Shown here in pieces: positions 1 through 62,326 of a DNA stretch of 64,000 nt. The position numbers were made by a program, and so were the translations under genes. Numbering within the stretch: position 1 is the stretch's first letter; each line of letters opens with the position of its first letter. The DNA comes from Mobula hypostoma (Eukaryota): assembly GCF_963921235.1 (NCBI RefSeq), contig NW_026948178.1:372001-436000 (forward strand). The letters run 5' to 3'. The notes below the pieces were generated by a model, which saw nothing but the letters and a program-made list of their open reading frames with translations, made no database searches and had not been told where the DNA came from.

Positions 1-310
1 CTGTTTATCGCCGTTTCTGTTCACTTGCCTGTGCCGTATGTCAGTTCGGTCTTTAACTCTATCAAGTAACTTTTTTTTGCTGTATTATACTATATTTTTG
101 AAAACGGACTGTTTTTCAAGCAGCTGGAAATAATCAGTCGTAATCATCCACCTGAAAGTTTAAATATGTTCCCCTCCCCAGTGCCGCCCACAAGTGAATG
201 ACAGTATATTGACAGCATTCTGTAGTTTTATCTCTGATCTGTGCATCTGTAGTATTTTGCTTCTTCCTGTAGTATACCTGTAGTATTTTTGCTTCTTTTT
301 GCTTCAAAAG

Positions 311-3195: not shown

Positions 3196-3239
3196 AACAG
3201 CACACAAGGTTTGATTCAGATCTGAGCAGAGTCCAGATT

Positions 3240-3356
3240 CTCTGATCCAATCAGCGCTGCCGCTTGTGACGTCAGCATCCAATTATCTGACGCGCAAACC
3301 CGGAAGTGCGGCTCAGTCTCCGAGTGTAACAGAGATCGGCGCTGCTCTCTGTCGGG
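3240..3356 (+). promoter_or_regulatory. TATA-less promoter of gene A cassette (CCAAT, CRE, ETS)
   Basis: CCAATCAG 3247, TGACGTCA 3267-3274, CCAAT 3279, ACCCGGAAGTG 3298-3308, just upstream of ATG 3357; conserved in all three cassettes. Confidence 0.65.
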
Positions 3357-3408
3357 ATGTCGGGACGGCCCTTCGCAGCGCTCCTTCTGTGTCTCTGCAT
3401 AACGGCGG
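3357..3408 (+). CDS. Gene A leader (signal peptide) exon MSGRPFAALLLCLCITA(G)
   Basis: ATG 3357, hydrophobic 17-mer, phase-1 donor G|gtgagg. Confidence 0.85.
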
Positions 3409-15900: not shown

Positions 15901-18070
15901 AATCCTAAAGGGATTGGACAGGCTAGATGCAGGAAGATTGTTCCCGATGTTGGGGAAGTCCAGAACAAGGGGTCACTGTTTGAGGATAAAGGGGGAGCCT
16001 TTTAGGACCGAGATTGGGAAAAACTTCTTCACACCGAGAGTGGTGAATCTGTGGAATTCTCTGCCACAGGAAACAGTTGAGGCCAGTTCATTGGCTATGT
16101 TTAAGAGGGAGTTAGATATGGCCCTTGTGGCTACGGGGATCAGGGGGTATGGAGGGAAGGCTGGGGCGGGGTTCTGAGTTGGATGATCAGCCATGATCAT
16201 AATAAATGGCGGTGCAGGCTCGAAGGGCCGAATGGCCTACTCCTGCACCTATTTTCTATGTTTCTATGTTTCTATTTCCAGTGATGCAACCAGAAATGCT
16301 GGGTTCCTCCGGCATTTTGTGTGCTTTGCACCGGATTTCCAGTACCTGCAGATTTTACTCACTGGAGTTATTTGCGGTTTCCACAGAATCCATAATGCTA
16401 GTACTATGCGAAAACATATCTTACTCTGGAATATATGTCAGGAAAGATCCGTTTTAAATGTGCGGTCAATGCGGGTGAGTCACAGAGGAAAAGCAGGGTC
16501 AGGTCTGCACCTGCCGGACTGTGATCAGCGATGATCCCGGTAGCGTTTAGAGAAATAACAAATACGCTCAGCATCCTGGGGCCACAAGCCCAGATCCCCA
16601 CTCTGTCACGTGCACGTTCTGATCCAGACTAATCTCTCAAGAGGATTGGTTCTGCATGCGAGCTCCTCGTCCAGCAACATGCATCCTGCTGTCCTTATCG
16701 CTGAATGCTTACGAATGAGTCCATGCTGTTCGGAAGCGTTCCTGGTGTCAGAGAAAATATATATTGCTCTGACACTGAATCAGACAGACACAGTGCATCG
16801 ACCGAGAATGGTGTCATATTGCTCAAGCAGCATAGAATATGAAAATTGATGCTGTCGGGAGTTTAATGTGGAGAGTCAGACTGCAATTGTTGTGCGCTTG
16901 GTTAAACGTCTCAATAGAAATCCTCGTCTTCTCTTTCCAGGGCACAAGGGACAATGCAGACGATGGAAGCTCTACTTATATGGTAAGGACTATATTTGCA
17001 TCAGTCTCTTTTTGAAGTAATTGTTTTAACTTCACACAATAAGAAACAGAACCTGAAGTGAGACATTCGATAGCGAAAATAAAGTAGAAGATGCAACAGA
17101 AGGGGATAGAGAAATGGCGGATCATCTCATGAAGTATGATGTGTCAGTCTTCACAGTGGAGCAAATCATCAGTGTAACAGTGTCAGTACAAGTGAGTGCT
17201 TGCAGTCACTATAATAAGGAGAATTTGCCAGGCAAGCTGGAAGGGCCGAAGGTAGATAAGTCACTTGGACTAAATGGACGAGATGAACTACACCACAACA
17301 TTCTGAAATGGGCCGCTGAAGAGGTATTAGACGGATTAGTACTGATATTCCCATCTGCAGATTGCTATGGAATTGTTTTTGAGGACCGGAAAGTTGCAAA
17401 TATCACTCTGATATTCTTGAAGGAAGGGAAGCGAATTGACAAGGGATTATGCTCCCTTTCGTTTGGGGATCATGCCTGTCTGTCTCGGATCCTCTTTTCA
17501 TCATGGTCTGACTATTCCGTGTTACTTTCAGACATAATTTATTAAATAAGCGGAAGTCATCTTCAATATTCCAGCTGTTCCCTTCTGTCACAAGTTGCTT
17601 TTGATTCAAAAAAATTCTGCTAATCATGCTGATTACGTTACATTGACAGGGACTTGTGCTGGAGGACCGATCTGTTTACAGTGATCTGAAGAGGTATGTG
17701 AATGGAATATTGGGCTGGCGATACACAGTGTCGCTTGTAAAGGAAACGTATCTACTAATTTCAGGTCTGTGAGTTATGCAGTGCCGTGTTTGTGCCCATG
17801 TATATATTACACTGTGATTAGCAGTTTCGAGACACTTAACAGGGCAAGATGCGAGTTAGGCGGTATCATACAGCGTTATATTGATATTGAAAGGAACAAA
17901 TTTCCTGGGCCCGTGGCGATATGAAAGATACAAGTTGTATGCAAAGTTGCATTGTCATGATGTTTGGCACAGAGTCTAAAATCATCATCCCGTAATTAAA
18001 ACTCACCAGCAGCAGCGCTTCCGGGTTGCTGACGTAGTCAACGTAAATGGTGTGTTGTTTCCTCAGATGA
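3357..18070 (+). CDS. CEACAM-like receptor gene A (leader, IgV N, TM, ITAM tail; 233 aa; spliced)
   Basis: Exons 3357-3408, 3610-3927, 8902-9022, 12169-12224, 12633-12697, 16941-16982, 17650-17693, 18067-18070. All introns GT-AG with compatible phases (1,1,2,1,0,0,2); total 702 nt, open to TGA. Every exon has a counterpart in gene B. Confidence 0.8.
3610..3927 (+). CDS. Gene A IgV-like N-domain exon (N1), no cysteines
   Basis: ttag acceptor, gtaagt donor, 318 nt; NGSLLL..V...DSGEY motif; lacks the canonical Ig disulfide as CEACAM N domains do. Confidence 0.9.
4452..4651 (+). pseudogene. Degenerate A-type IgC exon in gene A intron 2
   Basis: ttttgacag acceptor; EAVSWPNTTSNAAGSVEHNDTVSVACSARG aligns with exon 43090 (EPVSNVTVTSNATRLIEYNDTVTLTCLARG); loses similarity and stops at 4651 with no F-strand Cys. 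Confidence 0.7.
5023..6130 (+). mobile_element. Penelope-like element, truncated RT
   Basis: MDVQSLYTSIP, AMGTRMGP, RYIDD, YYKPT motifs; same insertion as 40180-41290. Confidence 0.9.
6545..7585 (-). mobile_element. CR1 LINE RT fragment
   Basis: Minus ORFs with YRPVSLTS, GVPQGS, KFADD. Confidence 0.9.
7755..8005 (+). mobile_element. Penelope terminal-repeat-derived fragment
   Basis: Similar to 41760-42005 (gtctcggcccgaaacgtcgac... motif). Confidence 0.7.
8330..8790 (-). mobile_element. CR1 3' end fragment
   Basis: Minus strand encodes IETFRMLKGRDRVDVE, typical CR1 ORF2 C-terminus. Confidence 0.75.
8902..9022 (+). CDS. Gene A transmembrane exon
   Basis: (A)KTDDKYTLGSGAIVGIVLGLLVVGLIGGVSGLLMARKIG(G); GxxxG-rich, resembles CEACAM1 GAIAGIVIG; phase 1 to phase 2. 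Confidence 0.85.
9150..11070 (+). mobile_element. CR1 LINE, degraded ORF2
   Basis: Similar to 311-2420; NYRPVSLTS, QHGFV motifs; many stops. Confidence 0.9.
12169..12224 (+). CDS. Gene A cytoplasmic exon 1 (IKDIPQSKHDRSVNSGRK)
   Basis: ttattcag/gtgagt; homologous to 47901-47938. Confidence 0.8.
12633..12697 (+). CDS. Gene A cytoplasmic exon 2 (STPDTNTVNPSQIYENFMGIEQ)
   Basis: ccgacag/gttgga; same 65-nt length as the homologue 48624-48688. Confidence 0.8.
12764..14469. mobile_element. LTR-type insertion (TG...CA, 5-bp TSD ATAGG) containing a Gypsy/Gmr1-like gag remnant
   Basis: ATAGG at 12759-12763 and 14470-14474; absent from the equivalent gene B intron; about 13365-13510 reads ...LVLFDEFKSCVPYAVRAY...ATLRGSAQKADDVVLTH (SCAN-like capsid). 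Confidence 0.7.
14908..16273 (+). mobile_element. Young 5'-truncated CR1 with 9-bp TSD
   Basis: TSD ATTTCCAGT at 14899-14907 and 16274-16282; 298-aa open RT C-terminus; (TTTCTATG)n tail. Confidence 0.92.
16941..16982 (+). CDS. Gene A cytoplasmic exon 3 (GTRDNADDGSSTYM), first part of ITAM
   Basis: ctttccag/gtaagg; 42 nt, phase 0/0; homologue 49918-49959. Confidence 0.8.
17650..17693 (+). CDS. Gene A cytoplasmic exon 4 (GLVLEDRSVYSDLKR), rest of ITAM
   Basis: ttgacag/gtatgt; 44 nt; homologue 51803-51846; stop follows in terminal exon at 18067 (cag|A TGA). Confidence 0.8.
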
Positions 18071-33210: not shown

Positions 33211-33725
33211 TTATTATGCTGTTGGTCTTCTCTGTTTCTGTGTATTTATCACCTAATGGAATACAGCCGCTGACTTGCCTTTCTTTGTGAATGTATAACC
33301 ATGTGAGGCCAAGCAGAGATTCTCTCAGAAGGAGCTTAAAGCTGCTCACCCTTCCCACCGCCGATCCTTCAATGAGGACTGGTGTGTGTTCTCTCGACCT
33401 GTCCTCCGCGGAGTTCACAATCACATCTTGCTGTCTTTGTGTACAAGATTATTGCGGCGGCAACTCTCAACTCGTCTACCTATCCCGGAGGGAAGTAATT
33501 TTGAGGAAAATCCCACGTGATCTGGTGGAGGAAGACACCAGAGTATCGCGGGCCGAACGGCCTTCTGCTTCTTCAGTGTTATTGGTTGGTTCACTCTCCG
33601 CTCTCTCGCTCTGCGCTCCGATCAGCTCCGGCTTTTCAGGTAACGGGCTCCCGGGATCCGTCATGGAGACCAGGAAATGAGACTCACTCTCCGAATGTAA
33701 CAGAGACAGGCGCCGCTCTCTCGGG

Positions 33726-33777
33726 ATCGCGTGGACGACGCTCACTTTACTCTCTCTTTTACTCTTCATGTCTGTGG
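33726..33777 (+). pseudogene. Dead leader exon (ATG replaced by ATC) with degenerate promoter
   Basis: ATC GCG TGG ... GTG G|gtgata = IAWTTLTLLSLLLFMSV(G); same 52-nt length and the same upstream ...tgtaacagagacaggcgc.gctctctcggg context as the intact leaders. Confidence 0.65.
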
Positions 33778-33997: not shown

Positions 33998-34049
33998 ATG
34001 TCGGGACTGCCCTTCGCAGCGCTCCTTCTGTGTCTCTGCATAACAGCCG
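33998..34049 (+). CDS. Leader exon of upstream cassette MSGLPFAALLLCLCITA(G)
   Basis: ATG 33998; donor G|gtaagg. Confidence 0.8.
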
Positions 34050-34251: not shown

Positions 34252-34569
34252 GTCAGTCCCAGCAGTTTACTATTACCGTTGAGCACAGCCAGATAAATGT
34301 CCCCGTTGGGGGTGATGCGCTTTTTTCAGTGCGGCCGTCGTCCAAGGTCAGAAGTGGAGACTGGTCTGTTAATGGGATTTTAGCCGTCTGGTGGATCGAT
34401 CAGACCGTGTCTGTTGACAATGTTTACAAACCGCGGGCAGAGTTATTCACCTCCAATGGGTCGCTTCTGCTGAAATCGGTGAACGTGCGGGACAGCGGGG
34501 AATACCGTGTGAATATGGTTCCAGTCAGTGGCTCCCAAACCTCAGCGACCATCACTCTGCGTGTTATTG
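34252..34569 (+). CDS. IgV N-domain exon N2 (upstream cassette of gene B)
   Basis: Intact 318-nt exon, ttag/gtaagt; no constant exons of its own before the next cassette. Confidence 0.85.
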
Positions 34570-35047
34570 GTAAGTGAGACAGAGTTATACACAGTCATGC
34601 GATCTCGGACTGTAAATTTCATTTTATTCCTGTGGTGAAAGAATACAATATAACCATTACGGTATCGCAGAACCTGGACTCCAGTGAACTCTGCCAGACC
34701 TACTTTCGGACTGTTCAGTTCTCACTGTTGTGCGTGGCTGTTTATCGCCGTTTCTGTTCACTTGCCTGTGCCGTATGTCAGTTCGGTCTTTAACTCTATC
34801 AAGTAACTTTTTTTTGCTGTATTATACTATATTTTTGAAAACGGACTGTTTTTCAAGCAGCTGGAAATAATCAGTCGTAATCATCCACCTGAAAGTTTAA
34901 ATATGTTCCCCTCCCCAGTGCCGCCCACAAGTGAATGACAGTATATTGACAGCATTCTGTAGTTTTATCTCTGATCTGTGCATCTGTAGTATTTTGCTTC
35001 TTCCTGTAGTATACCTGTAGTATTTTTGCTTCTTTTTGCTTCAAAAG

Positions 35048-37932
35048 TCTTCTGAGGTGTATATATTTCAATGCTAGGAGTAATGCGGGGAAGGCGGGTG
35101 AGTTGAGAGCGTGGATTGACACGTGGAATTATGATATTATATCAATTAGTGAAACTTGGCTACAGGAGGGGCAGGACTGGCAGCTTAATATTCCAGGGTT
35201 CCGATGTTTCAGATGGGATCGAGGTAGAGGAATGAAAGGTGGGGGATTAGCATTGCTTGTTAGGGAAAATATTACAGCAGTTGTCAGGCTGGACAGATTA
35301 GAGGGCTTGTCTACTGAGTCTTTATGGGTGGAGCTGGGAAACAGGAAAGGTATGGCCACATTAGTGGGATTGTATTACAGAACACCCAATAGTCAATGAG
35401 AATTGGAAGAGCAAATCTGCAGAGAGATAGCAGGCAACTGCAGGAAACATAAAGTTCTGGTGGTAGGGGATTTTAATTTTCCATATATTGATTGGTTCTC
35501 CCATACCTTTAGAGATCTAGATGGTTTAGAGTTTGTAAAATGTATTCAGGAAAGTTTTCTAAATCAATATATAGAGGGACCAACTGGAGGGGATGCAATA
35601 TTGGATCTCCTGTTAGGAAACGAGTTAGGACAAGTGACAGAAGTCTGTGTAGGGGAGCACTTTGGTTCCAGTGATCATAACACCATTAAATTCAACTTGA
35701 TCATGGACAAGGATAGATCTGGTCCTAGGGTAGAGGTTCTTAACTGGAAGAAGGCCAGAATTGAAAAAAATGAGAAAGGATCTAAAAAGCGTGGTTTGGG
35801 ACAGGTTGTTCTCTGGCAAGGACGTGATCGGTAGGTGGGAAGCCTTCAAAGGAGAAATTCTGAGACTGCAGAATTTGTATGTTCCTGTCAGGATTAAAGG
35901 CAAAGTGAATAGGAATAAGGAACCTTTGTTCTTAAGGGATATTGCAACTCTGATAAAGAAGAAGAGGGAGTTGTATGACATGTATAAGAAACAGAGAGTA
36001 AATAAGGTGCTTGAGGAGTATAAGAAGTGCAAGAAAATACTTCAGAAAGTAATCAGGAGGGTAAAAGAAGACATGAGGTTGCATTGGCAGTCAAAGTGAA
36101 GGATAATCCAAAGAGCTTTTACAGGTATATTAAGAGCAAAAGGATTGTAAGGGATGAAATTGGTCCTCTTGAAGTTCAGAGTGGTCGGCTATGTGCGGAA
36201 CCAAAGGAAATGGGGGAGATATTAAATATCTTTTGCTTCTGTATTTACTAAGGAAACTGGCATGAAGTCTTTGGAATTAAGGGAAACAAGTAATGAGATC
36301 ATGGAGACTGTACAGATCGAAAAGGAGGAGGTCCTTGCTGTCGTGAGGAAAATTAAAGTGGATAAATCCCCGGGTCCTGACAGGGTGTTCCCTCGGACCT
36401 TGCAGGAGACTAGTCTTGAAATTGCAGGGGCCCTGGCAGAAATATTTAAAAAGTCGCTGTCTCTTCGTGAGGTGCTGGAGAGTTGGAGAGTGGCTCCTGT
36501 TGTTCCGTTGTTTGAAAAAGGATCGAAAAGTAATCCGGGAAATTATAGGCCAGTAAATTTAACGTCGATAGTAGGTAAGTTATTGGAGAGAGTACCAAAA
36601 GACAGAATCTACAAGCATTTGGATAGACAGGGACAAATTAGGGAGAGTCAACATGGCTTTGTGCGTGGTAGGTCATGTTTGACCAATGTATTGGAGTTTT
36701 TCGAGGAGGTTACCAGGAAAGTGGATGAAGGGAAGGCAGTGGATATTGTCTACATGGACTTCAGTAAGGCCTTTGACAAGGTCCCGCATGGGAGGTTCTT
36801 AAGGAAAATTCAGTCGCTAGGTATACATGGAGAGGTGGTAAATTGGATTAGACATTGGCTCAATGGAAAAAGCCAAAGAGTGGTAGTAGAGAATTGCTTC
36901 ACCGAGTGGAGGCCTGTGACTAGTGGTATGCTACAGGTATCAGTGCTGGGTCCCTTGTTATTTGTCATCTATATCAATGATTTGGATAATAATGTGGTAA
37001 ATTGGATCAGCAAATTTGCAGATGATACTAAGATTTGAGGTGTAGTAGACAGTGAGGAAAGTTTTCAGAGCCTGCAGAAGGACTTGGACCAGCTGGAAAA
37101 ATGGGCTGAAAATTGGCAGATGGAGTATAATACAGACAAGTGTGAGGTATTGCACGTTGGAAGGACAAACCAAGGTAGAACAAACAGGGTTAATGGTAAG
37201 GCACTGAGGAGTGCAGTGGAACAGAGGGATCTGGGAAAACAGATGCAAAATTCCCTCAAAGTGGCGTTACAGGTAGATAGGGTCGTAAAGTGAGCTTTTG
37301 GTACATTGGCCTTTATTAATTGAAGTATTGAGTATTAGAGCTGGATTGTTATGATGAGGTTGTACAAGGCATTGGTGAGGCCGAATCTGGAGTATTGTGT
37401 TCAGTTTTGGTCACCAAATTACAGGAAGTATATAAATAAGGTTGAAAGAGTGCAGAGAAGGTTTACAAGAATGTTGCCGGGACTTGAGAATCTCTGTTAC
37501 AGAGAAAGGTTGAAAATGTTATGACTTTATTCCCTGGAGCGTAGAAGAATGAGGGGAGATTTGATAGAGGTATATAAAATTATGATGGGTATTGTAAGAG
37601 TGAATGCAAGCAGGCTTTTTCCACTGAGGCAAGGGGAGAAAAAAAAAAGGACATGGGTTAAGGGTGAGGGGGGAAAAGTTTAAAGGGAACATTAGTGGGG
37701 CTTCTTAACACAGAGAGTGGTGGGAGTATGGAATGAGCTGCCAGACGAGGTGGTAAATGCGGGATCTTTTTTAACATTTAAGAATAAATTGGACAGATAC
37801 ATGGACGGGATGTTTATGCAGTGATATGGACCGTGTGCAGGTCAGTGGGACTAGGCAGACAATGGTTCGGCACAGCCAATAAGGGCCAAAAAGCTTGTTT
37901 CTGTGCTGTAGTTTCTATGGTTTCTATGGTTT
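35048..37932 (+). mobile_element. CR1 LINE, duplicate of 311-3195
   Basis: Same disabling mutations as the first copy. Confidence 0.95.
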
Positions 37933-37976
37933 AACAGCACACAAGGTTTGATTCAGATCTGAGCAGAGTCCAGATT

Positions 37977-38093
37977 CTCTGATCCAATCAGCGCTGCCGC
38001 TTGTGACGTCAGCATCCAATTATCTGACGCGCAAACCCGGAAGTGCGGCTCAGTCTCCGAGTGTAACAGAGATCGGCGCTGCTCTCTGTCGGG
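37977..38093 (+). promoter_or_regulatory. Promoter of gene B proximal cassette (CCAAT, CRE, ETS)
   Basis: Near-identical copy of 3240-3356. Confidence 0.65.
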
Positions 38094-38145
38094 ATGTCGG
38101 GACTGCCCTTCGCAGCGCTCCTTCTGTGTCTCTGCATAACGGCGG
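38094..38145 (+). CDS. Gene B leader exon MSGLPFAALLLCLCITA(G)
   Basis: ATG 38094; donor G|gtgagg. Confidence 0.85.
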
Positions 38146-41100
38146 GTGAGGATCACTCTCTCTAACCAGTAGTGATCGTATCATCAACAGAACGACGGGT
38201 AGTTAGGTGAATGAAGGTGATTTTATAATTATCGACCGTACTGAGCTGAGAACCGATCCCTGGTATCTGTACAGACTGAGTTAAGTGCAGTTTCTCACGA
38301 CTATCTGCGTCGGTCGCTTTTCCCTCATATGATTTTCTCTTTCTCAGGTGAGTCCCAGCAGTTTACTATTACCGTTGAGCACAGCCAGATAAATGTCCCC
38401 GTTGGGGGTGATGCGCTTTTTTCAGTACGGCCGTCGTCCATGGTCAGCAGGGGAGACTGGTCTGTTAATGGGATTTTAGCCGTCTGGTGGATCGATCAGA
38501 CCGTGTCTGTTGACAATGTTTACAAAACGCGGGCAGAGTTATTCACCTCCAATGGGTCGCTTCTGCTGAAATCGGTGAAAGTGCGGGACAGCGGGGAATA
38601 CCGTGTGAATATGATTCCAGTCAGTGGCTCCCAAAGCTCAGCGACCATCACTCTGCGTGTTATTGGTAAGTGAGACAGAGTTATACACAGTCATGCGATC
38701 TCGGACTGTAAATTTCATTTTATTCCTGTGGTGAAAGAATACAATATAACCATTACGGTATCGCAGAACCTGGACTCCAGTGAACTCTGCCAGACCTATT
38801 TTCGGACTGTTCAGTTCTCACTGTTTTGCGTGGCTGTGTATCGCCGTTTCTGTTTGCAGGTTCTCCGCACTTGTCTTTGCCGAATGTCAGTTCAGCTTTT
38901 AAGTCTACCAAATAACATTTTTTGCTGTATTATACTGTATTTTTTTTTAAACGGACTGTTTTTCAAGTCAGCTGGAAACGATCAGTTCTAAATCATCCAC
39001 CTGAAAGTTTAACGATGCGCCCCTCCCCGGTGCCGCCCACATGTCTATGAAAGTATATTGACAGCATTCTGTAGTTTTATCTCTCATCTGTGCATCGGTA
39101 GTATTTTACTTTAAGCGGAATGTATATTCTTGGAGCCATCATTTCAGCACAGTACGATACGCGTGATACATGGTATTAGTATTTTGACAGAAGCCGTATC
39201 CTGGCCCAACACCACATCAAATGCCGCTGGCTCTGTAGAACACAATGACACGGTCAGTGTCGCTTGCTCGGCAAGAGGGGGACATGCTCCTTATTCGTGG
39301 TTAATGAAAAGCAAGACAGTTAGCTCTGCCGTTAGGATTACGGTGAGCAGCACATCGACTGAACGTTTACTGCCAGTGTCGCTGTATTAGACCATGTGTC
39401 AAACATTGATTCTATTTTCAAAGGAAACTTCGAGGCTCCGACACCGAGCCGGGAGCACCCCCTCTGCCGAGTGGCTTATGTTCACATGTTCCACGGAACA
39501 ATTATGCTATAACCAAGTGCAATTCCGTTTATTCTGCTTTGATATTTGCTGCAGTGGGTAACCTCTGAGAGGAGAATATGTTGCTCACCGTCCCCTTAGT
39601 GAGTTCATTCCAGAGAAATCCATCAAACCAGAACGTGCTGCAGACGGGACGGGGTCAAACACGATTTGCCCCTTTTCGGCTGTATCCGACCCCTGTGGTC
39701 CTTTTACAATAATCTGGACAGCGTTGCATATTTGTCGATTTATCCCCATATTTTTATTTACGTGTGAGCATTTAACAATGCAAACCAACTATCCAGCTCA
39801 GTACACGAAATAATTTCTTCTAGGATACCGTTTGTATTATCCCCAGAGGTGGACAAAAAGTGTCTAACTTGCGTATCCATGAACACAGAGTTTATTTTTA
39901 TTTTTTTCAGTTATCAGCATCTGGTAAGGTGGAGTCCGGTGCTGAGTAAGATATTCTGATGTGTGTCATTACGCAGTACTGGGCTTGCAACGCATACTTT
40001 TAAGACGAACCCCAAATTATATCTAAAAGTTGCTGGTGAACGCAGGAGGCCAGGCGGCATCTCTAGGAAGAGGTGCAGTCGACGTTTCAGGCCGAGACCC
40101 TTCGTCAGGACTAACTGAAAGAAGAGTGAGTAAGGGATTTGAAAGTTGGAGCAGGAGGGGTGGGGGCCATGGAACTGAAAATCATCGAATTTTAAGTTCC
40201 CTGGCGCCCACCGCTTTATTTTCACCATGGATGTCCAGTCCCTATATACTTCCATCCCCCATCAGGAAGGTCTCAAAGCTCTACGCTTCTTGTTGGTTTC
40301 CAGCCCTAATCAGTTCCCCTCTACCACCACCCTGCTCCGTCTAGCGGAATTAGTCCTTACTCTTAATAATTTCTCCTTTGGCTCCTCCCACTTCCTCCAA
40401 ACTAAAGGTGTAGCTATGGGCACCCGTATGGGTCCTAGCTCTGCCTGCCTTTTTGTTGGCTTTGTGGAACAATCTATGTTCCGTGTCTATTCTGCTATCT
40501 GTCCCCCACTTTTCCTTCGCTACATCGATGACTGCATTGGCGCTGTTTCCTGCAGGCATGCAGAGCGCGTTGACTTTATTAACTTTGCCTCCAACTTTCA
40601 CCCTGCCCTCAAGTTTACCTGGTCCATTTCCGACACCTCCCTCCCCTTTCTAGATCTTTCTGTCTCTGTCTCTGGAGACAGCTTATCCACTGATGTCTAC
40701 TATAAGCCTACTGACTCTCACAGCTATCTGGACTATTCCTCTTCTCACCCTGTCTCTTGCAAAAACGCCATCCCCATCTCGCAATTCCTCCGTCTCCGCC
40801 GCATCTGCTCTCAGGATGAGGCTTTTCATTCTAGGAAGAGGGAGATGTCTTCCTTTTTTAAAGAAAGGGGCTTCCCTCCCTCCACTATCAACTCTGCTCT
40901 TAAAAGCATACTCCCCCATTTCACGTACATCTGGTCTCACTCCATCCTCCCGCCACCCCACTAGGAATAGGGTTCCCCTGGTCCTCACCTACCACCCCAC
41001 CAGCCTCCGGGTCCAACATATTATTCTCCATAACTTCCGCCACCTCCAACGGGATCCCACCACTAAGCACATCTATCGCTCCACCAATTTCTCTGCATTC

Positions 41101-44100
41101 CGCAGAGATCGCTCCCTACACAACTCCCTTGCCCATTCGTTCCCCCTCCCATCCCTCCCCACTGATCTCCCTCCTGGCACTTATCCGTGTAAGCGGAACA
41201 AGTGTTACACATGCCCTTACACTTCCTCCCTTACCACCATTCAGGGCCCCAAACAGTCCTTCCAGGTGAGGCATCACTTTACCTGTGAGTCGACTGGGGT
41301 GATAGACTGCGTCCGGTGCTTCCGATCTGGCCTCTTATATATTGCCGCAGACTGGGAGTCGTTTGCTGAACATCTACGCTCTGTCCGCCAGAGAAAGCAG
41401 GATCTCCCAGTGGCCAGACATTTTAATTCCACATCCCATTCACATTCTGACAGTTCTATCCACGGCCTCCTCTACTGTAAAGATGAAGCCACACTCAGGT
41501 TGGAGGAACAACACCTTATATTCCGACTGGGTAGCCTCCAACCTGATGGCATGAACATCGACTTCTCTAACTACCGCTAATGCCCCACCTCCCCCTCGTA
41601 CCCCACTGTTACTTATTTTTATACACACATTATTTCTCTCACTCTCCTTTTTCTCCCTCTGTCCCTCTGAATATACCCCTTGCTCATCCTCTGGATCCTC
41701 CCCCCCCCCCCCCGCCACCTCCTTGCCTTTCTTCCCGGACCTCCTGTCCCATGATCCTCTCGTATCCCTTTTGCCTATCACCTGTCCAGCTCTTGGCTCT
41801 ATCCCTTCCCCTCCTGTCTTCTCCTATCATTTTGGATCCCCCCTCCCCCTCCCACTTTCAAATCCCTTACTCACTCTTCCTTCAGTTAGTCCTGACGTAG
41901 GGTCTCGGCCTGAAACGTCGACTGCACCTCTTCATAGAGATGCTGCCTGGCCTGCTGCGTTCACCAGCAACTTTTATGTGTGTTGGTTGAATTTCCAGCA
42001 TCTGCAGAATTCCTGTTGTTCCCAAATTATATCTGTTCCGTCTCGTGTGATAACAATTTCCATTGGCTCCAAAACATTAACATTAACACTGAACTTTGGA
42101 TCATTTCAGTAGCGATAGATTCTCTGGATGATATTAGAAACTGTTGTCAGTATTTCTGTTCTGTGTTTGCCAGTGATTATGCATCATCTTTCTCATTGCC
42201 AAGTGACCCTTGCCTGAAGTGAATCATTTCCTACTTCCTCCTTCACGAGCTCCATTGATTTGCCATTTTTGTCGGGTTTGTTTTTGACATATGCAATTTC
42301 AAAACGCCATGGCGTCGCAGATTAAAACAGAGAGACAATATGGTTAATCTTCAACATCATGATCATAATGTAAGTCCTTCATCCTGAAGCCGCAAGCGGT
42401 CCAGAAAATGATTCACAATCGTCCAACTGGAATGGGAGTCTCTTGAACTTAGGAGGGTGGTTCGACCGAGACCTTACTCTCCGAGCGTGGCAGGTCGTGG
42501 CATGATCATACAGAAGTTTCTAAAATCACGAAAGGCACAAGTAATTTCGATGTTCACCTATTTTAGCAGGCTACAGTGGTCTAAAATAAAGAACTTAGAT
42601 TCATAGCTAGTGAGGTAAAGTAAAAGGGACAGCCTTATGCACAATGTGTTCCGCAAATGCTAGGAACTGCCAAAGGGAATGCTGGAGATGCGTGGAAATA
42701 TAATGTTCAGAAATCATGTAGACAACAGAAGTATATAACAGTTTATACATGGTCCAGTTGCAGGCAAATGGGAATAGTTCAACGAAATAGCTTGGTCAGC
42801 ATGAACGAGATCGGCAGAAGGGTCCTTGAGGCGATGAATGATATGGCTACACCTGAAGGGAGAGAATTTCAACATACTGTCTCTGAGTAAGCGATGAATA
42901 AAGAATGAAGTCACTTGTCTCAATTCTAGTGTCTCCATCTCAATCCTTAACTCAATCAAGTGGAATTATTTGTTAATGTTTACTTATTATGGAGAATAAT
43001 GATTTTATTTTAAGATTCAGAACAGAAGCCATAAACTGCCGGATTCTATTCCTGGGTCGTTCATTAACTTCTCCTGTCTGTTTTAACAGAACCTGTTTCC
43101 AATGTCACCGTAACATCTAATGCCACCAGACTGATAGAGTACAATGACACCGTCACTCTAACCTGCCTCGCAAGAGGCACGGCAGTCTCTTACCTGTGGC
43201 TTGAGGAGAATAGCATGATAATTCCTGGCGGCAGGATTGAACTAAGTGCGGACAACAGCACACTTATTGTTTCTGGAGTGCTACGGACAGACGGAACTTT
43301 CACCTGCAGAGCAAACAACCTGATTATTGAAATCACAAGCGCTCCGTTTTCTCTCGATGTCAACTGTAAGCACCCCGAGAGTTCCGTAGTAACACATAAT
43401 ATTACAGGTCGCGCTAGATACAGGGTTCCGGGAGTGTGTGATTATATCATTGAACGTTACATCAATGGACTAACACCGGAACAACTGAACAGTTAATTGG
43501 GAGACGGATCGGGGTCTATCGATATGCTTATGAGTGATGTGCATTGTATCCAGGTTGGAGAAGGAGACGGGTTTGGGGATAGGAGGTAACTGTGCATAGT
43601 TTCTTAAAACGTGTTTAATCTGACACTGTGACCTGACTCCCCTATTTACCGCGGGTGGCTTCCAGACCAATGCCGCCGTCGTTGTGTGGGAGCACTTTCT
43701 CTGCTGGTGGGCTGTTCTTCCTCTCGCGGCAAGAGGAATCCGTTTTGTCCGTTTCATTTCAGACGGACCGGATCGTCCACATATCATCACTGAACCGGAC
43801 TCTACTCTTCACGTTGCCGGAAGCAGCGTATCGTTAACATGTTTCACACTGTCGCACCCAGACGCTGAACTGAATTGGCAACTGAACGGTGCCCATCTCC
43901 AAAGTGGGCAGCTTCTCATCCTCGACAACATCTCTGTGAGCCAGACGGGAAGGTATACTTGTGAGGCTTATAACATGCTTACAATGAAGAAAAATTCCTC
44001 AACCAGGGAAATTGATGTTTACGGTAGGTAGTCTGCTCCTCCCTTTGTTGAGGTCGTATATAGCGGCGTTGGTGCAGCCAGGGCAGTGTAATTGAACTGA

Positions 44101-47100: not shown

Positions 47101-50100
47101 TCTTATCAGGTCACCTCTCATCCTCCGTCGCTCTAAGGAGAAAAGGCAGAGTTCACTCAAACTATTCTCATAAGGCATCCTCCCTATTCCAGCCAACATC
47201 CTTGTACACCTCCTCTGCACCCTTTCTGTGGCTTCCACATCCTTCCTCTAGTGAGGCGACCAGAACTGAGCACAGTACTCCAAGTTTGGTTTGCCCAGGG
47301 TTCTATATAGCTGCAACATTACCACTCGGGTCCTAAATTCAATTCCACGACTAATGAAGGTCAATACACCGTGTGCCTTCTTAACAACAGTGTCAAGCGG
47401 CGTAGCTGCTTTGAGCGTCCTATGGACTCGGACCCCAAGATCCCTCTGATCCTCCACACTGCCAAGAGTCTTACCATTAATACTATATTCTGCCATCAGA
47501 TTTGCCCTACCAAAACCAGATTTTTTGAGGATTTCGGCAGAACCGACTTCTGCCCGGATCCGGGATCATCTGTGGGCAGAATCAGCATTCCGCCTTCACG
47601 GTGACGTTCTTTGTCTGAAATCTGAACATCTGTCTGAAAGAGGCCTGTGTTCAGCAAGATTTCTGTAAACAGCATATATGTCAAAAAGGGCCAAAGCAAT
47701 TTTCTTTCCTTTACGAATTATGGTCACTGTTGTTGTGATCGAGTAGGGCTGGAATCCGGCGTCCAATAACCAGAACAGTATCAAGGAATAACAAGAGAGT
47801 ATCCAATGCAATTGTAGGAGCCGTTCTCATTCAGTGTATCCGTGCAGGAAAGTGACTTCCTGCCGAATCCATGTTTTGACCTTTGTTTCTGTTTATTCAG
47901 GATCAAAGATCCACCACAATCCAAATCCGGAAGGAAGAGTGAGTGAACTGCATTTGAAATTTTCTAACTTGGAGCCAATGGAAATCTTAACATTGATTTT
48001 AATTTGGGAGCTCATAGTGCACGGCATTGACAGAGTGGATGTGACAAAGTTGTTTCCCATGATGGGGGAGTCTAGTACGAGAGGGCATGACTTAAGGATT
48101 GAATGGAGCCGATTCAGAACAGAAATACGAAGATTTTTTTTTAGTCTGAGGGTGGCGAATCTATGGAATTTGTTGCCACGGGCAGCAGTGGAGGCCAAAT
48201 CATTGGGGAGTGGGACAAAAGGGGAGAATGGATCAGTTCATGGAAAAATGGCGGAGCAGACTCGATGGGCCGAATGGCCGTCTTCTGCTCCTTTGTCCTA
48301 TGGTCTTATGGAATATGGAGGTTTTCATCAGAGCGAATGGTCACGAATTACGCGACTTTTGTCGTGGAGTTTTCCATTTATATAAGGTGAAATTTTCTGC
48401 TCAAGATTAGAATATCAGCGGAGAGATGGGATAGCAGTTTATACAACGTAATTTCTCTTCATATTGATCAATATCGGTCCTCACTTCCTGGTTCTGGCGA
48501 TTGGTGGGACGGAAGCTCATGCTATCAATGGCGTTTTGTTTTGGGCCGGATTGACGTCTGCTGTGTTCAACAACGGCTCCTGCCGCTCTGCACCGTTGTC
48601 ACATATCTGTTTGGTTCCCACAGGCACCTTGGATACAAATACCGTGAACACACCGCAAAACTATGAGAATTTCCCCAGGAATGAACAGGTAGGGTGGTCA
48701 TGATCTCCGTCATGGTTTTGCCCAGGGACGATAAGAACACGAGTAATGCGACCGGTAGCGTCCATCGGGCCTTTCCGCTCTGATTGGTCATTTAATAAGA
48801 TCATGGTTCATCGATGTCGGATCTCATTGTCAGTTAATGGAGAAACAACACATCATATTCTGCAAAGTAAACCCAATCCTGATGGTATGAACATCGACCT
48901 TATCCCACCGGTATTTCTTTTCACCTCCGTCTTCTTCTATTGTCACTCTGGCCTCTTATCCCTTCTCCTTATCTGCCCATCATCTCCCCCTGGTGCCCCT
49001 CCTTCTTCCCTTTCTCCTATGGCACACTCGCCTCTGCAATCCGACTACTTTTTCTTCATCTTCCCTTGTCCCACCCGTCAGGCCTCACCTATCAGCTCCC
49101 AGCCAGGCCCCCTTCCCCTCGCCACCATTTTGTTCAGGCGTCTTCCTGCCTCCTTCTCAGCCCAGTAGATGTGTATCGTCACAAAACCTAAACGGATTAA
49201 TAAATTCTATTAATGCTGCCTGACACTCTGAGTTCCTTCGGCATTTTGTGCGTGTTGCTCTGATTTTCCAGCACCTGCAGAATTTCCACAGTATACCCCA
49301 GAATCTATTATACCTGTAAGATGCAAAAACATATCCGACCTTTGCTGCAACATTTTTCATGAAAGAGTCTTTTATAACGTCCGATCAATGTGAGTAACGC
49401 CGGAGACTCCACAATCACTCACAGAGTGAAGCCGTGGTCAGGTTTGCACATTTCTGTCTCTGATCAACAGTGATCTCTGTGAGCGTTCAAGAGAAACAGC
49501 AGCTTACGGTGAACAGCCTGAGGCCACGAGTCCGCATTCTGATCCAGACTTACCTGTCAAGATGAATGGCTTTCAATCCGCCGAGTGAACGTTCTGATCC
49601 AGACAAATCTCTCAGAAGGAATGGTTTTAAAGGCAAATTACTCCTCAAATAATATTCACCACGCTCCATGGTGACTGAATATTGACGAATGGTTTAATGA
49701 CATTCAGTAACATTGCTGACGTTGGGGAAAATGTATATTGCACTCGCTCTGAATCAGAAACTCGCAGAGCATCGAACGGTGACCGATACAATTTCGCTCC
49801 AAGCAGCAACGACTGTGACCATTGATACCCTCCGGGTTTATATGTGCAGAGTCAGAATACAATTGTTGTTCACTTGTTTAAACGTCATGATAAAAAAACG
49901 CCTTTTTCTCTTTGCAGGGCGCAAGTCACAATGCACAAGACGAAAACTCCACTTACATGGTATATGCGTCAATCTCTCATTGAAGTAATTGTTTCCATTT
50001 CATTGAGTAAGAAATAGACCCTGAAGTGAGACGTTCCATAGACTGCAGTGTTGAGCACAACATTAATATGTCAGTGTCAGGATACGAAAGTGATTGCGGT

Positions 50101-52222
50101 CACTATAATAAGGGGCAGTGTCATGGGAAGCTGAAAGGGAGGAAGGTAGAAGAGTCAACTGGACTAAATGGACGAGATGAGCTACACACTAGGGTTCTGA
50201 AATGGGCCGCTGAAGAGGGAGTGGAGGAATTAGCACTGATATTCCAAGCCTCACGTCACTATTGAATTGTTTTGAAGGACTGCAAAGTTGCAAATATCAC
50301 TACGCTCTTTACGAGGAAAGGGGCTGAACTGACAGGATGGGGTAAGACTGCACGATAAAAGAGGAGGTTTGAGGATAGATGGAGGCACGAGATAAAACGG
50401 GTGGCAGGCAGGAATGTTTTGCCCCTGCGAAAATCCTGCCTGGCAATGCTGTTGGAATTCTTGGAGGAAATCACATGTGCGATCGACAAAAGAGAGTCAG
50501 AGGGAGTTGTGCACTTGGATTTTCAGACGGCCTTTGACAAGGTAACGCACATCAGGCCACTGAACATAAGAGCGCATGGTATTACATGGCAGAAGACAGC
50601 ATGCACAGAGGTTTGTCCGACCGGAAGGAAGGGAAGAGTGGGATTGAATGGGATAGTTGTGTGTTGGGCTGCCGAATTGGGCTACCAGTGCGGTTCTGCT
50701 GGTGTCGGTGTTCGGCCGCTTCTTCCCGTGTTTCCAGTCAATGAGATCGACAAATGAGCTGGTGGATGTGTGGTCAGGCTTGGGGACGATGCAAAGATAG
50801 TTGTAGGGGGTGTGCAGGACTTAGGAAGCTGCGGGTCTGCAGAAGGAGTTGGAACAATGAGGGAAACAGAGAAACAACTGCAACTAAAATCCAGTGCATG
50901 GAAGCATTAGTTCGTGCTCTTTGACAGGCGTGAAGCCGGAGCCTATTTTCCGAAAGGGATTGAACTTACAAATCGGAGGTGAAAATGCCCTATGCAGTTG
51001 TAGTGCAAGGTTGCTGAAAGTCGAACTTTCAGGTTGCGTTAGTGATAAGGAAGGAAGGCAAGTGCATTGTTGTCCATCATTTTGACAGGTATCGAACACA
51101 AACGTGAAAGATATTGAAGGGATTTGTCAGAGAAGACTCAGAATATTTTGAAGAGTGTTGAAGACCTTTTCTTAGAAAGGACAGGGTGGCTTTGGAGGAA
51201 ATTAACGAGAATTATCTAAGGAGTGAAAGCGTTTAACGACTCTGAGTTCTCTACCCACTGTAGTTTGGCAGAATGACTTATTTGAAACATACTTATCGCG
51301 GGAGTGTCTCAGACCAAAGGGCACAGCCTGAGAGTACAATGAACGCCCTTTGGAACGGAGAGATAAGAAGGAATATCTTTAGACAGAGCGTGTTTTATCT
51401 GCGCTATTTATTGTCGCTTATGGCTGTGGAGGCCAATGTACTCTGTTATGAAGCGTTGATCGCGCCGAATGTTGCAGAGTGAAGGCGGGTGAATGGGGTT
51501 GAGAGTGACAGTAAATCGGACATGATAAAATGAGGGAGCGGGCTCCATGTCAGGAATTGATTAAACCTTCCCCTGCGTCTTCTCCTGGAGACTCATGGAA
51601 GTCTCGTTCCTCCCTCAATTTTCAATAACTACGTGTCTCAGAAAATCCTCTTTCCATCATGTTCTGGCTGATCCGCGGTTCTTTCAAAGCGAGATCGTTA
51701 AATACGGGCAGGTCCTTTCCAATATTCCTCCAATTCTCCTCTACCATGTCCTGATTTTGATAATATTTTTTGTTAATGCTGACGATTTCCTCACGTTAAC
51801 AGGAACTTAATCTGGGCGATCGATCTGTTTACAGTGATCTGAAGAGGTAAGTGAACAGAACATCCGGCTCTCGATGTAAAATGTTACCTACAAAAGAAAC
51901 ATATCGATAATGTTCAAGACTGTGAGTCGTGCAGGATATGTGATCGTTCCCGTGCACATATCACATTGTGATTAGCAATATACATAGATGTAACAGTGTA
52001 CGACTGGAATCAGGAGGCGTTGAGAGGCGATATATTGATAATCAAACGAACAATTTTCGTGGGGCCGTGGTCATATGAAACATGTAAATTGTATGCAAGG
52101 TTGCTTTGTCACGATGTTTGACACGGATTGAGAAAACACCGCTCGTCTTTCTCCTCACCAACAGCAACTCCTTCGGGTTGCCTGCGGAGTCAACATGAGT
52201 TGTGTATTGTTTCCGCAGGTGA
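38094..52222 (+). CDS. CEACAM-like receptor gene B (leader, N, A1-B1-A2-B2 IgC2, TM, ITAM tail; 585 aa; spliced)
   Basis: Exons 38094-38145, 38348-38665, 43090-43365, 43763-44023, 45682-45957, 46108-46365, 46605-46728, 47901-47938, 48624-48688, 49918-49959, 51803-51846, 52219-52222. GT-AG, consistent phases, 1758 nt open frame. Cys-less IgV followed by alternating EPV.../YGP... IgC2 exons is the CEACAM pattern. Confidence 0.88.
38348..38665 (+). CDS. Gene B IgV N-domain exon N3
   Basis: ctcag/gtaagt, 318 nt, Cys-less V-set, DSGEY. Confidence 0.9.
39191..39390 (+). pseudogene. Degenerate A-type IgC exon in gene B intron 2
   Basis: Copy of 4452-4651; retains the C-strand Trp (YSWL) but ends at the same stop. 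Confidence 0.7.
40020..42020 (+). mobile_element. Penelope-like element (RT plus GIY-YIG remnant) with inverted partial terminal repeat
   Basis: RT YIDD ORF 40227-40964; GVIDCVRC..SGLLYI (GIY-YIG-like) ...PDGMNIDF; 40020-40165 is an inverted copy of about 41840-41985. Confidence 0.9.
43090..43365 (+). CDS. Gene B IgC2 exon A1
   Basis: EPVSNVTVTSN...TLTC...YLW...TFTCRANN...LDVN; ttaacag/gtaagc; 276 nt. Confidence 0.9.
43763..44023 (+). CDS. Gene B IgC2 exon B1
   Basis: YGPDRPHI...SLTC...LNWQLNG...TGRYTCEAYN; tttcag/gtaggt; 261 nt. Confidence 0.9.
44245..45620 (-). mobile_element. Two adjacent CR1 fragments in gene B intron 4
   Basis: Minus ORFs with VPRGSVLG, KLADV, MRGDLIE; (CCATAAG)n tail at 44245. 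Confidence 0.85.
45682..45957 (+). CDS. Gene B IgC2 exon A2
   Basis: EPVTGVTV...LSCDASG...WFKDN...DAGTYKCIASN; tttacag/gtaagt; 276 nt. Confidence 0.9.
46108..46365 (+). CDS. Gene B IgC2 exon B2
   Basis: YGPEMIRI...LTLTC...YVWYNG...GSYTCRVTN; ttttag/gtgagt; 258 nt. Confidence 0.9.
46605..46728 (+). CDS. Gene B transmembrane exon
   Basis: (A)PKTDDNITLTAGAIVGIVLGLLGMGLIGGVTGWFIARKTS(G); ttag/gtaaac. Confidence 0.88.
46780..47510 (-). mobile_element. CR1 3' fragment
   Basis: DLGVRVHRTLK...LEYCAQFWSPH on minus; tail at 46780. Confidence 0.85.
47901..47938 (+). CDS. Gene B cytoplasmic exon 1 (IKDPPQSKSGRK)
   Basis: ttattcag/gtgagt; 18 nt shorter than the gene A exon, in frame. Confidence 0.8.
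48025..48310 (+). mobile_element. Short CR1 3' end, gene B-specific
   Basis: DRVDVTKLFP...TRGHDLRI; absent at the matching gene A position (about 12310). Confidence 0.75.
48624..48688 (+). CDS. Gene B cytoplasmic exon 2 (STLDTNTVNTPQNYENFPRNEQ)
   Basis: cccacag/gtaggg; 65 nt. Confidence 0.8.
49918..49959 (+). CDS. Gene B cytoplasmic exon 3 (GASHNAQDENSTYM)
   Basis: tttgcag/gtatat; 42 nt. Confidence 0.8.
50110..51570 (+). mobile_element. Old degraded CR1 (5' part shared with gene A about 17220-17440)
   Basis: KSCLAMLLEFLEEIT...HLDFQTAFDKV. Confidence 0.75.
51803..51846 (+). CDS. Gene B cytoplasmic exon 4 (ELNLGDRSVYSDLKR)
   Basis: ttaacag/gtaagt; 44 nt; terminal exon cag|G TGA at 52219-52222. 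Confidence 0.8.
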
Positions 52223-56044: not shown

Positions 56045-56179
56045 NNNNNNNNNNNNNNNNNNNNNNNNNNNNNNNNNNNNNNNNNNNNNNNNNNNNNNNN
56101 NNNNNNNNNNNNNNNNNNNNNNNNNNNNNNNNNNNNNNNNNNNNNNNNNNNNNNNNNNNNNNNNNNNNNNNNNNNNNNN
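56045..56179. other. Assembly gap (135 N)
   Basis: Run of N. Confidence 1.
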
Positions 56180-60714: not shown

Positions 60715-62326
60715 GGTGGTTTTCTCACCGCTGACTCCATTGGCCCTGTTAACGAGCCGTGTTTCAGGAGGAGCCCGGTAAAAGGGAGTTTCACTCATTT
60801 GCCTGTAAGTGGACAGTTCCACCTGAGAAGGTGTGAATCCGGATTTACTGACCTCACCCCTACGGAAACTGTGCACAGTGAAAGCCCACGGCGCACACTA
60901 GATCTTCAGTGATCTACTCATCTCTCAATGTAAACACTCACATGTGAGCTCTCTCAGTCGTCCCAGTGGAGGCGTGAGACATCTTTACTCGCATATCCTG
61001 ATCTCTACACCACTCCAGGATGCTCAGGTGATCTCAGCAACATCTCATCATGTCTGTTCTCTTTGCCTCATTAAATTAAATCCTCTTCCATGCTCTACGC
61101 GCTTTACTTACCTTTCTTTGTGAAATTATAAATATGTGAGGCCAAGCAGAGATCCTCTCAGAAGTTCACGCCAAGAAGCTTAAAGCTGCTCACCACTTCC
61201 GGGAGGACGTGTGTCTGTTCGCTTGAATTCTCCTTCGTGAAGTCCACAATACATTCCTTCGTCTCGCTGTCTTGCTGTGCGGCTTCACTCAACCAGTCTA
61301 TCTATCTGGCAGTTAAGCAGTATTCAGAAAAATGACACGTGAGCTGGTAGAGGATGAAATAAGAGGAGCGAGGACGGATCGGCCTTCTCCTTCTTCCGCG
61401 TTTTCGGTTCGTTTATTCCCCTCGACACGTTCTCGCTCCGCGACCCATTCAGCTCCGCCTTTTCAGATGACGGGCTGCAGTGATCCGGCGCGGAGACCAG
61501 GAAGTGCGGCTCAGTCTCCGAGTGTAACAGACACAGGCGCTGCTCTCTCTCGGGATGGCGGGGTTGTCCATCTCAGAGCTTGCTCTTTGTCTGTTCATTC
61601 CTGCGGGTCACTCTCTCAGGAGCGTCTGCTCAGTCAATCAGGATGCTGGACAGTTGCTGAGAAAGCTGGGCTGACAGGGAACGGGACGGGGGCTTCTTCG
61701 GTGGGAGACGAAGAGAGAGGAAGGCCGAGGGAACCAGCGGGAGGATTCCATCCAATCGGAATGCTCCATACTATGGAGTCCAAGGGGAAAGTTCTTTCGA
61801 CGCCGTGAGTACAAGGACAGCGCCACCTTTTGGATGATTTGAGCTACAACGTCGTACAAATTTGACTACTTTAAAATAATGGCAGCTTTATTTATTTATT
61901 TATTTTTCTTCTGTTCCCTTACGTTGGCATTGATAAATTTAACTTTATTCTATTTCTGTGCAGTGTACAAGGGGACAAGGGGACAGCATTTACACTGTAT
62001 TCGCAGATATTTGGGGGCAGATGGTTGAAGCATTCGGACTCTCCCGGTCTGCTGGGTCCCAAGTCACAACGACGCAGGACGTACGGAGCTGTTGAAAGTC
62101 GGCTTTCTCACCGCTGAGTCCATTGGTTTGTTAACGAGGGGGTAACCAGCCATGTTTCTGGAGGCGCCCGCTAAAAGGGCGTTTCTCTCAGTTGTCTGTA
62201 GTTATCCACTCATCTCTCGGATGCGAACTCACATGGGCGCCTTTTCAGTCGACCCAGGGGAAGTTTACGACAACTGCATACCCATGTCCTAATTTCTGCT
62301 TCACGCCATGATTCTGGGGTGATTTA
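60715..62326 (+). repeat. Diverged local duplication (60715-61040 vs 62100-62326) around the orphan leader
   Basis: tttctcaccgctga.tccattgg...gttaacgag...tgtttc.ggagg.gcccg.taaaaggg.gttt shared by both copies. Confidence 0.6.
61555..61606 (+). pseudogene. Orphan leader exon MAGLSISELALCLFIPA(G) with ETS-containing promoter
   Basis: Same 52-nt length; upstream ggaagtgcggctcagtctccgagtgtaacaga identical to the other promoters; donor shortened to gtcact; no N exon about 200 nt downstream. Could belong to a gene beyond the window. Confidence 0.6.

Follow-up and report, generated by a model that had tools for sequence, protein, structure and literature searches.

A probable case of mosaic concerted evolution around an N-domain exon in a CEACAM-like receptor cluster of Mobula hypostoma

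A window of 64,000 nt from a CEACAM-like receptor cluster of Mobula hypostoma, on the whole of which all positions are numbered here, contains three copies of a leader-N cassette, whose N exons (N1, N2 and N3) code for a membrane-distal immunoglobulin variable (IgV) domain. The exon under study, N3 (38348-38665, forward strand), has 318 nt, phase 1-1, an AG acceptor and a GTAAGT donor, and its frame is open from the third base; it codes for a cysteine-free N domain and is paired with N1 (3610-3927) in a 5-kb duplication. N1 and N3 differ at 5.66% of their positions, yet the introns beside them have diverged to a similar degree, and it is this whole patch, exon and adjacent introns together, that stands out from the more similar DNA on both sides. 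The pattern is probably the outcome of mosaic concerted evolution, whereby homogenised tracts have stopped on either side of the N exon. The original prediction had read the same exons as bearing the mark of pathogen-driven selection on a ligand-binding face, next to almost invariant junk DNA.

Divergence strata along the duplication

Self-comparison of the window pairs 1-5025 with 34738-39767 (copy B) at 98.9% identity, and reveals a third copy of a cassette of ~1.18 kb, which holds N2 (34252-34569); both this third copy and the diverged introns beside the N exon had been missed by the original prediction. The identity of the duplication, all on the forward strand, falls into three strata. 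In the first, 1-3366 pairs with 34738-38103 over a dead long interspersed nuclear element (LINE), the promoter and the start of the leader exon, with one difference in 3366 bp (0.03%), a mismatch at 2376 that bears out the single difference previously counted by eye in the dead transposon. The fragmented frames of this LINE match Exo_endo_phos (endonuclease) and RVT_1 (reverse transcriptase). The second stratum is the diverged patch (3367-4314, paired with 38104-39053), where 41 substitutions in 948 bp (~4%) are distributed over leader, intron 1, N exon and intron 2. The third is an intermediate tract (4373-5025, paired with 39112-39767), with 8 differences in 653 bp (1.2%).

Partitioning of the patch gives 10/200 differences and one indel in intron 1 (3410-3609; 5.0%), 18/318 in the N exon, 7/200 in intron 2 between 3928 and 4127 (3.5%), and 12/387 with one indel when intron 2 is followed to 4314 (3.1%); the partition 4128-4372 contains 5/245 differences and one indel (2.0%). 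The exon does not differ significantly in divergence from intron 1 (Fisher p=0.84), nor from both flanks pooled (23/630; p=0.18). The flanking introns are separated from the near-identical tract at p=5e-18, and the 1.2% tract differs both from 1-3366 (8/653 vs 1/3366, p=4e-6) and from the introns of the patch (p=0.006).

These values bear directly on the step by which exon-specific selection had been deduced from an invariant neighbour. That step fails, since the introns beside the exon are as diverged as the exon itself (5.0% and 3.1-3.5% vs 5.7%). An identity profile along the duplication, which had been proposed as a check, places the step in divergence at ~3367, inside the leader exon and not at the edges of the N exon. 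Because selection on a protein cannot raise the divergence of introns a hundred-fold, the step at ~3367 is a boundary between DNA of different histories. As far as can be judged from the sequence, the contrast between exon and transposon is likely to mark a gene-conversion boundary, rather than the limit of an exon under selection.

Where the 5-kb duplication ends, copy B carries an insertion of 408 bp (39768-40175), after which 5023-6140 and 40176-41302 are collinear at 92.9%, in a repeat with a long open reading frame that has no Pfam match. This pair may belong to the same duplication or may represent separate copies of one repeat, and it is not relied on here.

Mosaic history of the diverged patch

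The gapless alignment of N1 and N3 gives 18 differences in 318 nt, which amount to 15.5 nonsynonymous and 2.5 synonymous differences by the Nei-Gojobori method (236.7 and 78.3 sites) and to 15 amino-acid changes from N1 to N3, namely Q1E, N11H, K31M, R33S, S34R, S43L, V44A, R46W, L48I, G55D, E57V, T59K, S60T, N77K and V89I. The counts made by eye in the original prediction (18/318 nt, 15 amino acids and ~2 synonymous changes) are thus correct, as is its observation that most changes lie in the middle of the exon. The centre (3689-3789 in N1, 38427-38527 in N3) contains 14 differences in 101 nt (13.9%), and the other 217 nt contain four. This hot centre is significant within the patch by a scan statistic (P=0.008, 100-nt windows), as well as against the flanking introns (14/101 vs 23/630, p=1.5e-4). 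Neither the ratio of transitions to transversions (6:12 in the exon, 11:12 in the flanks) nor CpG context has any power to explain the differences.

At the DNA level three cassettes are available for comparison. Their pairwise differences are star-like, with 7, 9 and 10 of 201 positions in intron 1, and 12 (N1-N2), 9 (N2-N3) and 18 (N1-N3) of 318 in the exon, and the maximum-likelihood (ML) branch lengths are 0.110 for N1, 0.078 for N3 and a very short 0.011 for N2. Between 3196 and 4100 the branch-specific differences are arranged in blocks, with 10 runs for 17 and 14 sites (runs test P=0.015; P=0.001 with all three labels). Among eight close M. hypostoma N domains, states of the N1 type and of the N3 type occur in many combinations, and 34 of 78 informative site pairs fail the four-gamete test. 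A tree of the framework places all close M. hypostoma copies in one poorly resolved group. The tree built from the centre (residues 29-61) makes N3 the sister of its tandem neighbour N2 (support 95/85), followed by the proteins P0162 and P0166, and N1 lies near P0161; in this part of the exon N3 therefore does not group with N1, despite their near-identical flanks.

The states found in the centre are widely shared. L43, A44, W46, I48, D55, V57 and K59 of N3 are common to other paralogues, most of the centre states occurring in N2 and in two or three further M. hypostoma paralogues, and R46, E57, T59 and S60 of N1 are likewise common to other M. hypostoma copies. States so distributed must be older than the event that equalised the flanks, or else have been spread by conversion, and fresh substitutions after the duplication are not the source of most N1-N3 differences in the centre. 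T59 and S60 of N1, which together with G55 and E57 make up the motif GNEYTS, are also found in M. birostris proteins, and by comparison of these sequences the motif looks ancestral. The broader idea that both motif types of the centre are ancient and cross-species was considered and is weakened, as the centre tree keeps the M. hypostoma sequences together and the N3-type states are shared within M. hypostoma.

A history that would account for these observations begins with genes A and B of the window, which carry the N1 cassette and the N2 and N3 cassettes, respectively, and are two old paralogues, with bodies ~80% identical and 5' modules 95-99.97% identical. The far greater likeness of the 5' modules argues for concerted evolution of this part of the gene. 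The modules would have been homogenised repeatedly, by non-allelic gene conversion or segmental copying, and of these mechanisms we infer gene conversion. A recent tract of at least 3.4 kb would end inside the leader exon at ~3367, and an older homogenised tract would begin near 4315-4373. The patch of ~950 bp between the two tracts, comprising the exon and its adjacent introns, would then retain an older divergence of 3-5%, and within it N1, N2 and N3 would be related in a star-like and partly mosaic manner. The patch may have been spared because selection disfavours making ligand-binding domains alike.

Several points weigh against this history. With noncoding sites only, the runs test is not significant (P=0.11). 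Forcing N1, N2 and N3 into one clade in the centre costs 17.8 log-likelihood units, yet that arrangement is not rejected by the approximately unbiased (AU) test (p=0.13), and AU tests of segment discordance overall give p=0.13-0.47. If rates are allowed to differ, a plain ((N2,N3),N1) tree accounts for the patch almost as well as does a mosaic, which itself is drawn from three DNA sequences. There are two flanking tracts, so that the sparing of the exon could be due to chance, and the left end of the near-identical tract lies beyond the window, its length being therefore at least 3.4 kb. Finally, five exon states private to N3 (38427, 38441, 38448, 38451 and 38580) appear in no Logan contig of three sequencing runs, although such contigs drop minority paralogue variants. 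As they follow the majority paralogue path, the contigs can neither confirm nor deny the N3-private states, nor give copy number; run X2 yields 120 contigs at 88-100% likeness, representing many paralogues.

Selection, constraint and the placement of replacements

The AlphaFold (AF2) model of the domain is a confident IgV fold (mean predicted local distance difference test score, pLDDT, 95.8), with strands A (7-9), A' (13-16), B (22-28), C (32-39), C' (42-48), C'' (51-54), D (62-65), E (70-73), F (82-90) and G (96-104). When placed on this model, the replacements fall in the BC loop (31), strand C (33, 34), strand C' (43, 44, 46, 48), the C''-D loop (55, 57, 59, 60) and strand F (89), which together account for 12 of the 15; the others are at the N-terminus (1), in the A-A' loop (11) and in the E-F loop (77), and strands B, D, E and G contain none. 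The changed positions have higher entropy than the rest across 70 other elasmobranch N domains (2.10 vs 1.26 bits, P=2e-4). Contigs of a related species at 88% likeness do not align over 38413-38532, and align over the rest of the exon and intron 2 with a difference of ~8-10%. On the model, the hot centre thus codes for the predicted BC-C-C'-C''D region, which is the hypervariable part of the family. The earlier reading of a changing ligand-binding face stands as regards the clustering of replacements in BC, C, C' and C''-D, at family-variable sites; it does not extend to strands F and G, which are nearly invariant, with V89I as their one change.

One explanation would make diversifying or diversity-maintaining selection on the ligand-binding face (C-C'-C'') the main cause of the pattern, whereby conversions were removed and the introns diverged merely through linkage. 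The ratio of nonsynonymous to synonymous rates (dN/dS) for N1 and N3 is 2.1-3.1 depending on the method, and a GY94 ML fit on a star tree of the three sequences gives an omega of 2.55. In the centre dN is ~0.15, compared with 0.037 in the flanking introns. Agreement comes from the placement of the replacements, from the hypervariability of the same sites across rays and sharks, and from the local failure of the related-species contigs, as well as from the homogenised tracts, which terminate to the left and right of the exon in the manner of bovine CEACAM32 (PMC7042247). None of the tests is significant, however, whether on the N and S counts (Fisher, one-sided p=0.13), or on the three sequences by a likelihood-ratio test against omega=1 (p=0.16) or by M1a vs M2a (p=0.29). 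All 2.5 synonymous differences also lie in the centre, where the proportion of synonymous differences (pS) is ~0.10 compared with 0 elsewhere, which argues for an older history of this segment rather than selection alone. Tight clusters of differences occur in the introns as well (3534-3569 and 4106-4111), and no elasmobranch CEACAM-like protein has a known ligand or pathogen. The pathogen-driven selection of the original prediction thus retains a dN/dS point estimate above 1 and loses both statistical significance and the contrast with the introns, which are equally diverged. The excess of replacements hints at diversity-maintaining selection, which for the centre is plausible, with somewhat less than an even chance; as the main cause of the whole pattern, selection is a serious candidate of about the same, somewhat unfavourable, standing.

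A non-adaptive explanation is relaxed constraint, in which several interchangeable cassettes serve each gene, loops and edge strands drift almost neutrally, and mismatches suppress conversion such that an island of divergence perpetuates itself. The divergence of the exon (5.7%) is statistically equal to that of the introns (3.65-5%), the ratio of nonsynonymous to synonymous differences (15.5:2.5) does not differ from a neutral ~13.5:4.5, an omega of 1 is not rejected, and the changed sites vary freely across the family. Against relaxed constraint, the framework is conserved (4/217 nt), while the centre, at 13.9%, reaches 3-4 times the level of the introns; the ATG, GT donors, AG acceptors and open frames are intact in all three cassettes, and N exons of the family are transcribed; and some replacements are radical, e.g. 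R46W, K31M and G55D. This explanation is considered rather unlikely. An assembly artefact, in which the near-identical 3.4 kb or the N3-private block would have arisen because an unplaced, repeat-rich scaffold was mis-assembled or mixes haplotypes, could draw on the location of the homologous annotated genes on a 667-kb scaffold and on the absence of the private states at 38427-38451 and 38580 from the contigs examined, but is very improbable, given that genes A and B differ in architecture and are only 80% identical in nucleotides across their transmembrane (TM) exon regions, that a publicly annotated protein matches every exon of gene A at 100%, that N3 intron 1 and the beginning of the exon are reproduced without a mismatch, seven N3-private states among them, in a 256-nt contig of an independent run (X1), and that Logan contigs systematically keep the majority paralogue path.

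Known CEACAM systems and the layout of the locus

In primates, the N domains of CEACAM1, CEACAM3, CEACAM5 and CEACAM6 exhibit both positive selection and recurrent N-domain gene conversion (Baker et al. 2022, PMC8860441). The ray cluster resembles this system in that a membrane-distal IgV domain, free of cysteine, has a phase-1 exon to itself within a multigene cluster, and in that variation is focused on one part of the domain, with mosaic states among paralogues and signs of conversion. In primates the demonstration of selection drew on many orthologues, on GARD-informed site models and on assays of adhesin binding, whereas the ray offers three DNA sequences and no significant omega, and its variable part is BC-C-C'-C''D, the F and G strands being almost invariant. 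A closer likeness in structure is found in bovine CEACAM32, where conversion tracts cover the leader exon and introns and spare the Ig-domain exon, leaving a diverged coding island; in its escape from concerted evolution the authors saw selection that keeps the mature protein from being homogenised (Hanske et al. 2020, PMC7042247). The island in the ray differs in extending into the introns, by ~240 bp in intron 1 and by ~390 bp in intron 2, and in lying between two tracts of different age. The two cases also belong to different lineages and gene architectures, and no specialisation of expression is known for the ray genes.

Conversion of N exons with diversification of the CC'C''FG region is also described in Xenopus (Zimmermann and Kammerer 2016, PMC5112662), and likewise in primates (PMC8860441) and reptiles (2026 preprint, PMC13278318). 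The paired receptors of Xenopus and reptiles share with the ray large lineage-specific clusters, tails of the immunoreceptor tyrosine-based activation motif (ITAM) and inhibition motif (ITIM) types, and N-exon conversion, with rapid nonsynonymous CC'C''FG change after conversion. There, however, conversion renders the N exons more alike than the introns, while in the ray the N region is less alike than its surroundings; moreover, the paired genes of those animals face each other, whereas the cassettes and genes of the ray are all on one strand. No analysis of selection or conversion in elasmobranch CEACAMs was found in the literature searched. Overall, the ray pattern matches the known behaviour of CEACAM N domains, i.e. 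conversion combined with diversification, here in Mobula hypostoma, and selection is suggested.

The stronger proposition, that tandem CEACAM-like N cassettes of this cartilaginous fish are actively kept different in the C-C'-C'' face while promoters, leaders and introns are homogenised, is regarded as unlikely on present evidence. If true, the receptor and decoy diversification of mammalian, amphibian and reptile CEACAMs, whether driven by pathogens or by other ligands, would already operate in elasmobranchs, and would make use of alternative leader-N cassettes ahead of a shared constant module. Rapid N-domain diversification together with conversion is a hallmark of those CEACAM receptors that are exploited by microbes in mammals; its demonstration in a ray would move this mode back to the base of the jawed vertebrates and point to elasmobranch ligands. 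There is also a lesson of method, in that, within a multigene cluster, a diverged exon next to identical junk DNA signals mosaic concerted evolution, for which the neutral yardstick is provided by the introns that share the history of the exon, and not by the nearest repeat.

Several observations bear on the assignment to the CEACAM family. CEACAMs exist in cartilaginous fishes (PMC5112662, PMC13278318). In Pfam the N domain falls just under the V-set threshold, with a weak match to 2B4 (CD2 family), and a HMMER search of the whole library recovers 278 relatives, the best of them from batoid rays; homologues bear the automatic NCBI name 'CEACAM-like'. The exon organisation carries the family hallmarks, namely a short leader exon and then a single phase 1-1 exon for a membrane-distal IgV domain that lacks cysteine, followed by immunoglobulin constant (IgC) domains of the IgC2 type and/or a TM exon, and tail exons of the ITIM, ITAM or ITAM-like kind. 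A profile of 73 N domains, when compared with PDB, finds human and mouse CEACAM1 and CEA best (E 1e-12 to 1e-11), a score that sums several Ig domains; Foldseek ranks PD-L1, CEACAM7, TIGIT and CEA alike and does not separate CEACAM from other IgV folds. None of the flanking marker genes of the vertebrate CEACAM locus lies in the 64-kb window.

Gene A is represented by XP_062895386 (P0151; 233 aa, Mobula hypostoma), which matches every gene-A exon in the window at 100% identity, N1 being its residues 19-123; its architecture is leader-N1-TM-tail, with the tyrosine motif YMGL-x7-YSDL. Gene B comprises the N2 and N3 cassettes, IgC exons at 43-46 kb, where Pfam identifies Ig_2, Ig_3 and I-set, and TM and tail exons of its own. 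The constant, TM and tail exons of P0162, a protein with two IgC domains, a TM segment and the same tail type as P0151, map to gene B at 100%; its N domain, which shares 94% identity with N2, falls outside the window. The coding part of the leader exon in the N3 cassette (38094-38145) consists of 17 codons plus 1 nt and has a GTGAGG donor, and homologous leaders are found at 3357-3408 (N1) and 33998-34049 (N2), all on the forward strand. The splice from leader to N exon (38145>38348) is present in RNA contigs of runs X1 and X6, and N exons of the family, N3 or a close copy, are thus transcribed and spliced to the leader. Because 1-262 (and 34738-34999) is homologous to the intron after N2, the window probably starts just downstream of a fourth cassette (N0), expected to code for the N domain of P0162, and the duplicated unit would then be N0-LINE-N1 vs N2-LINE-N3.

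Further features of the cluster accompany these genes. The tail halves are at 16938-16982 and 17650-17694 in gene A, and at 49915-49959 and 51803-51847 in gene B; the spliced tails of both genes (STYMGL/STYMEL ... SVYSDL) conform to an ITAM (YxxL-x7-YxxL), and either half taken singly agrees with the ITIM consensus as well. An RNA contig of run X6 runs at 38662 from the end of an N exon directly into TM-exon sequence coding for AKTDDKYTL, which is the N-TM architecture of gene A and P0011, its source being a paralogue with an N domain that ends in RVS. Downstream of N1 and N3 (4376-4648 and 39115-39387) there is a remnant resembling an IgC exon, with weak similarity to the IgC exon of P0012 and no Pfam hit; that of gene A is not part of the annotated product P0151. 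Four to five tandem copies of the N domain are carried by P0001 (M. hypostoma 'titin-like', 468 aa), P0002 and P0003, which are genuine receptors with several V domains or else predictions in which adjacent N cassettes have been strung together. The window includes 135 N at 56045-56179, an assembly gap or mask. Short matches to the promoter/5' untranslated part of the cassette (3285-3367) occur at 61483-61562 (87.5%) and 33669-33737 (80%), with no N exon nearby in the window, and may be relics, or may mark where further cassettes begin. At 38028, loose contig ends reflect an alternative upstream sequence that is carried by other paralogues.

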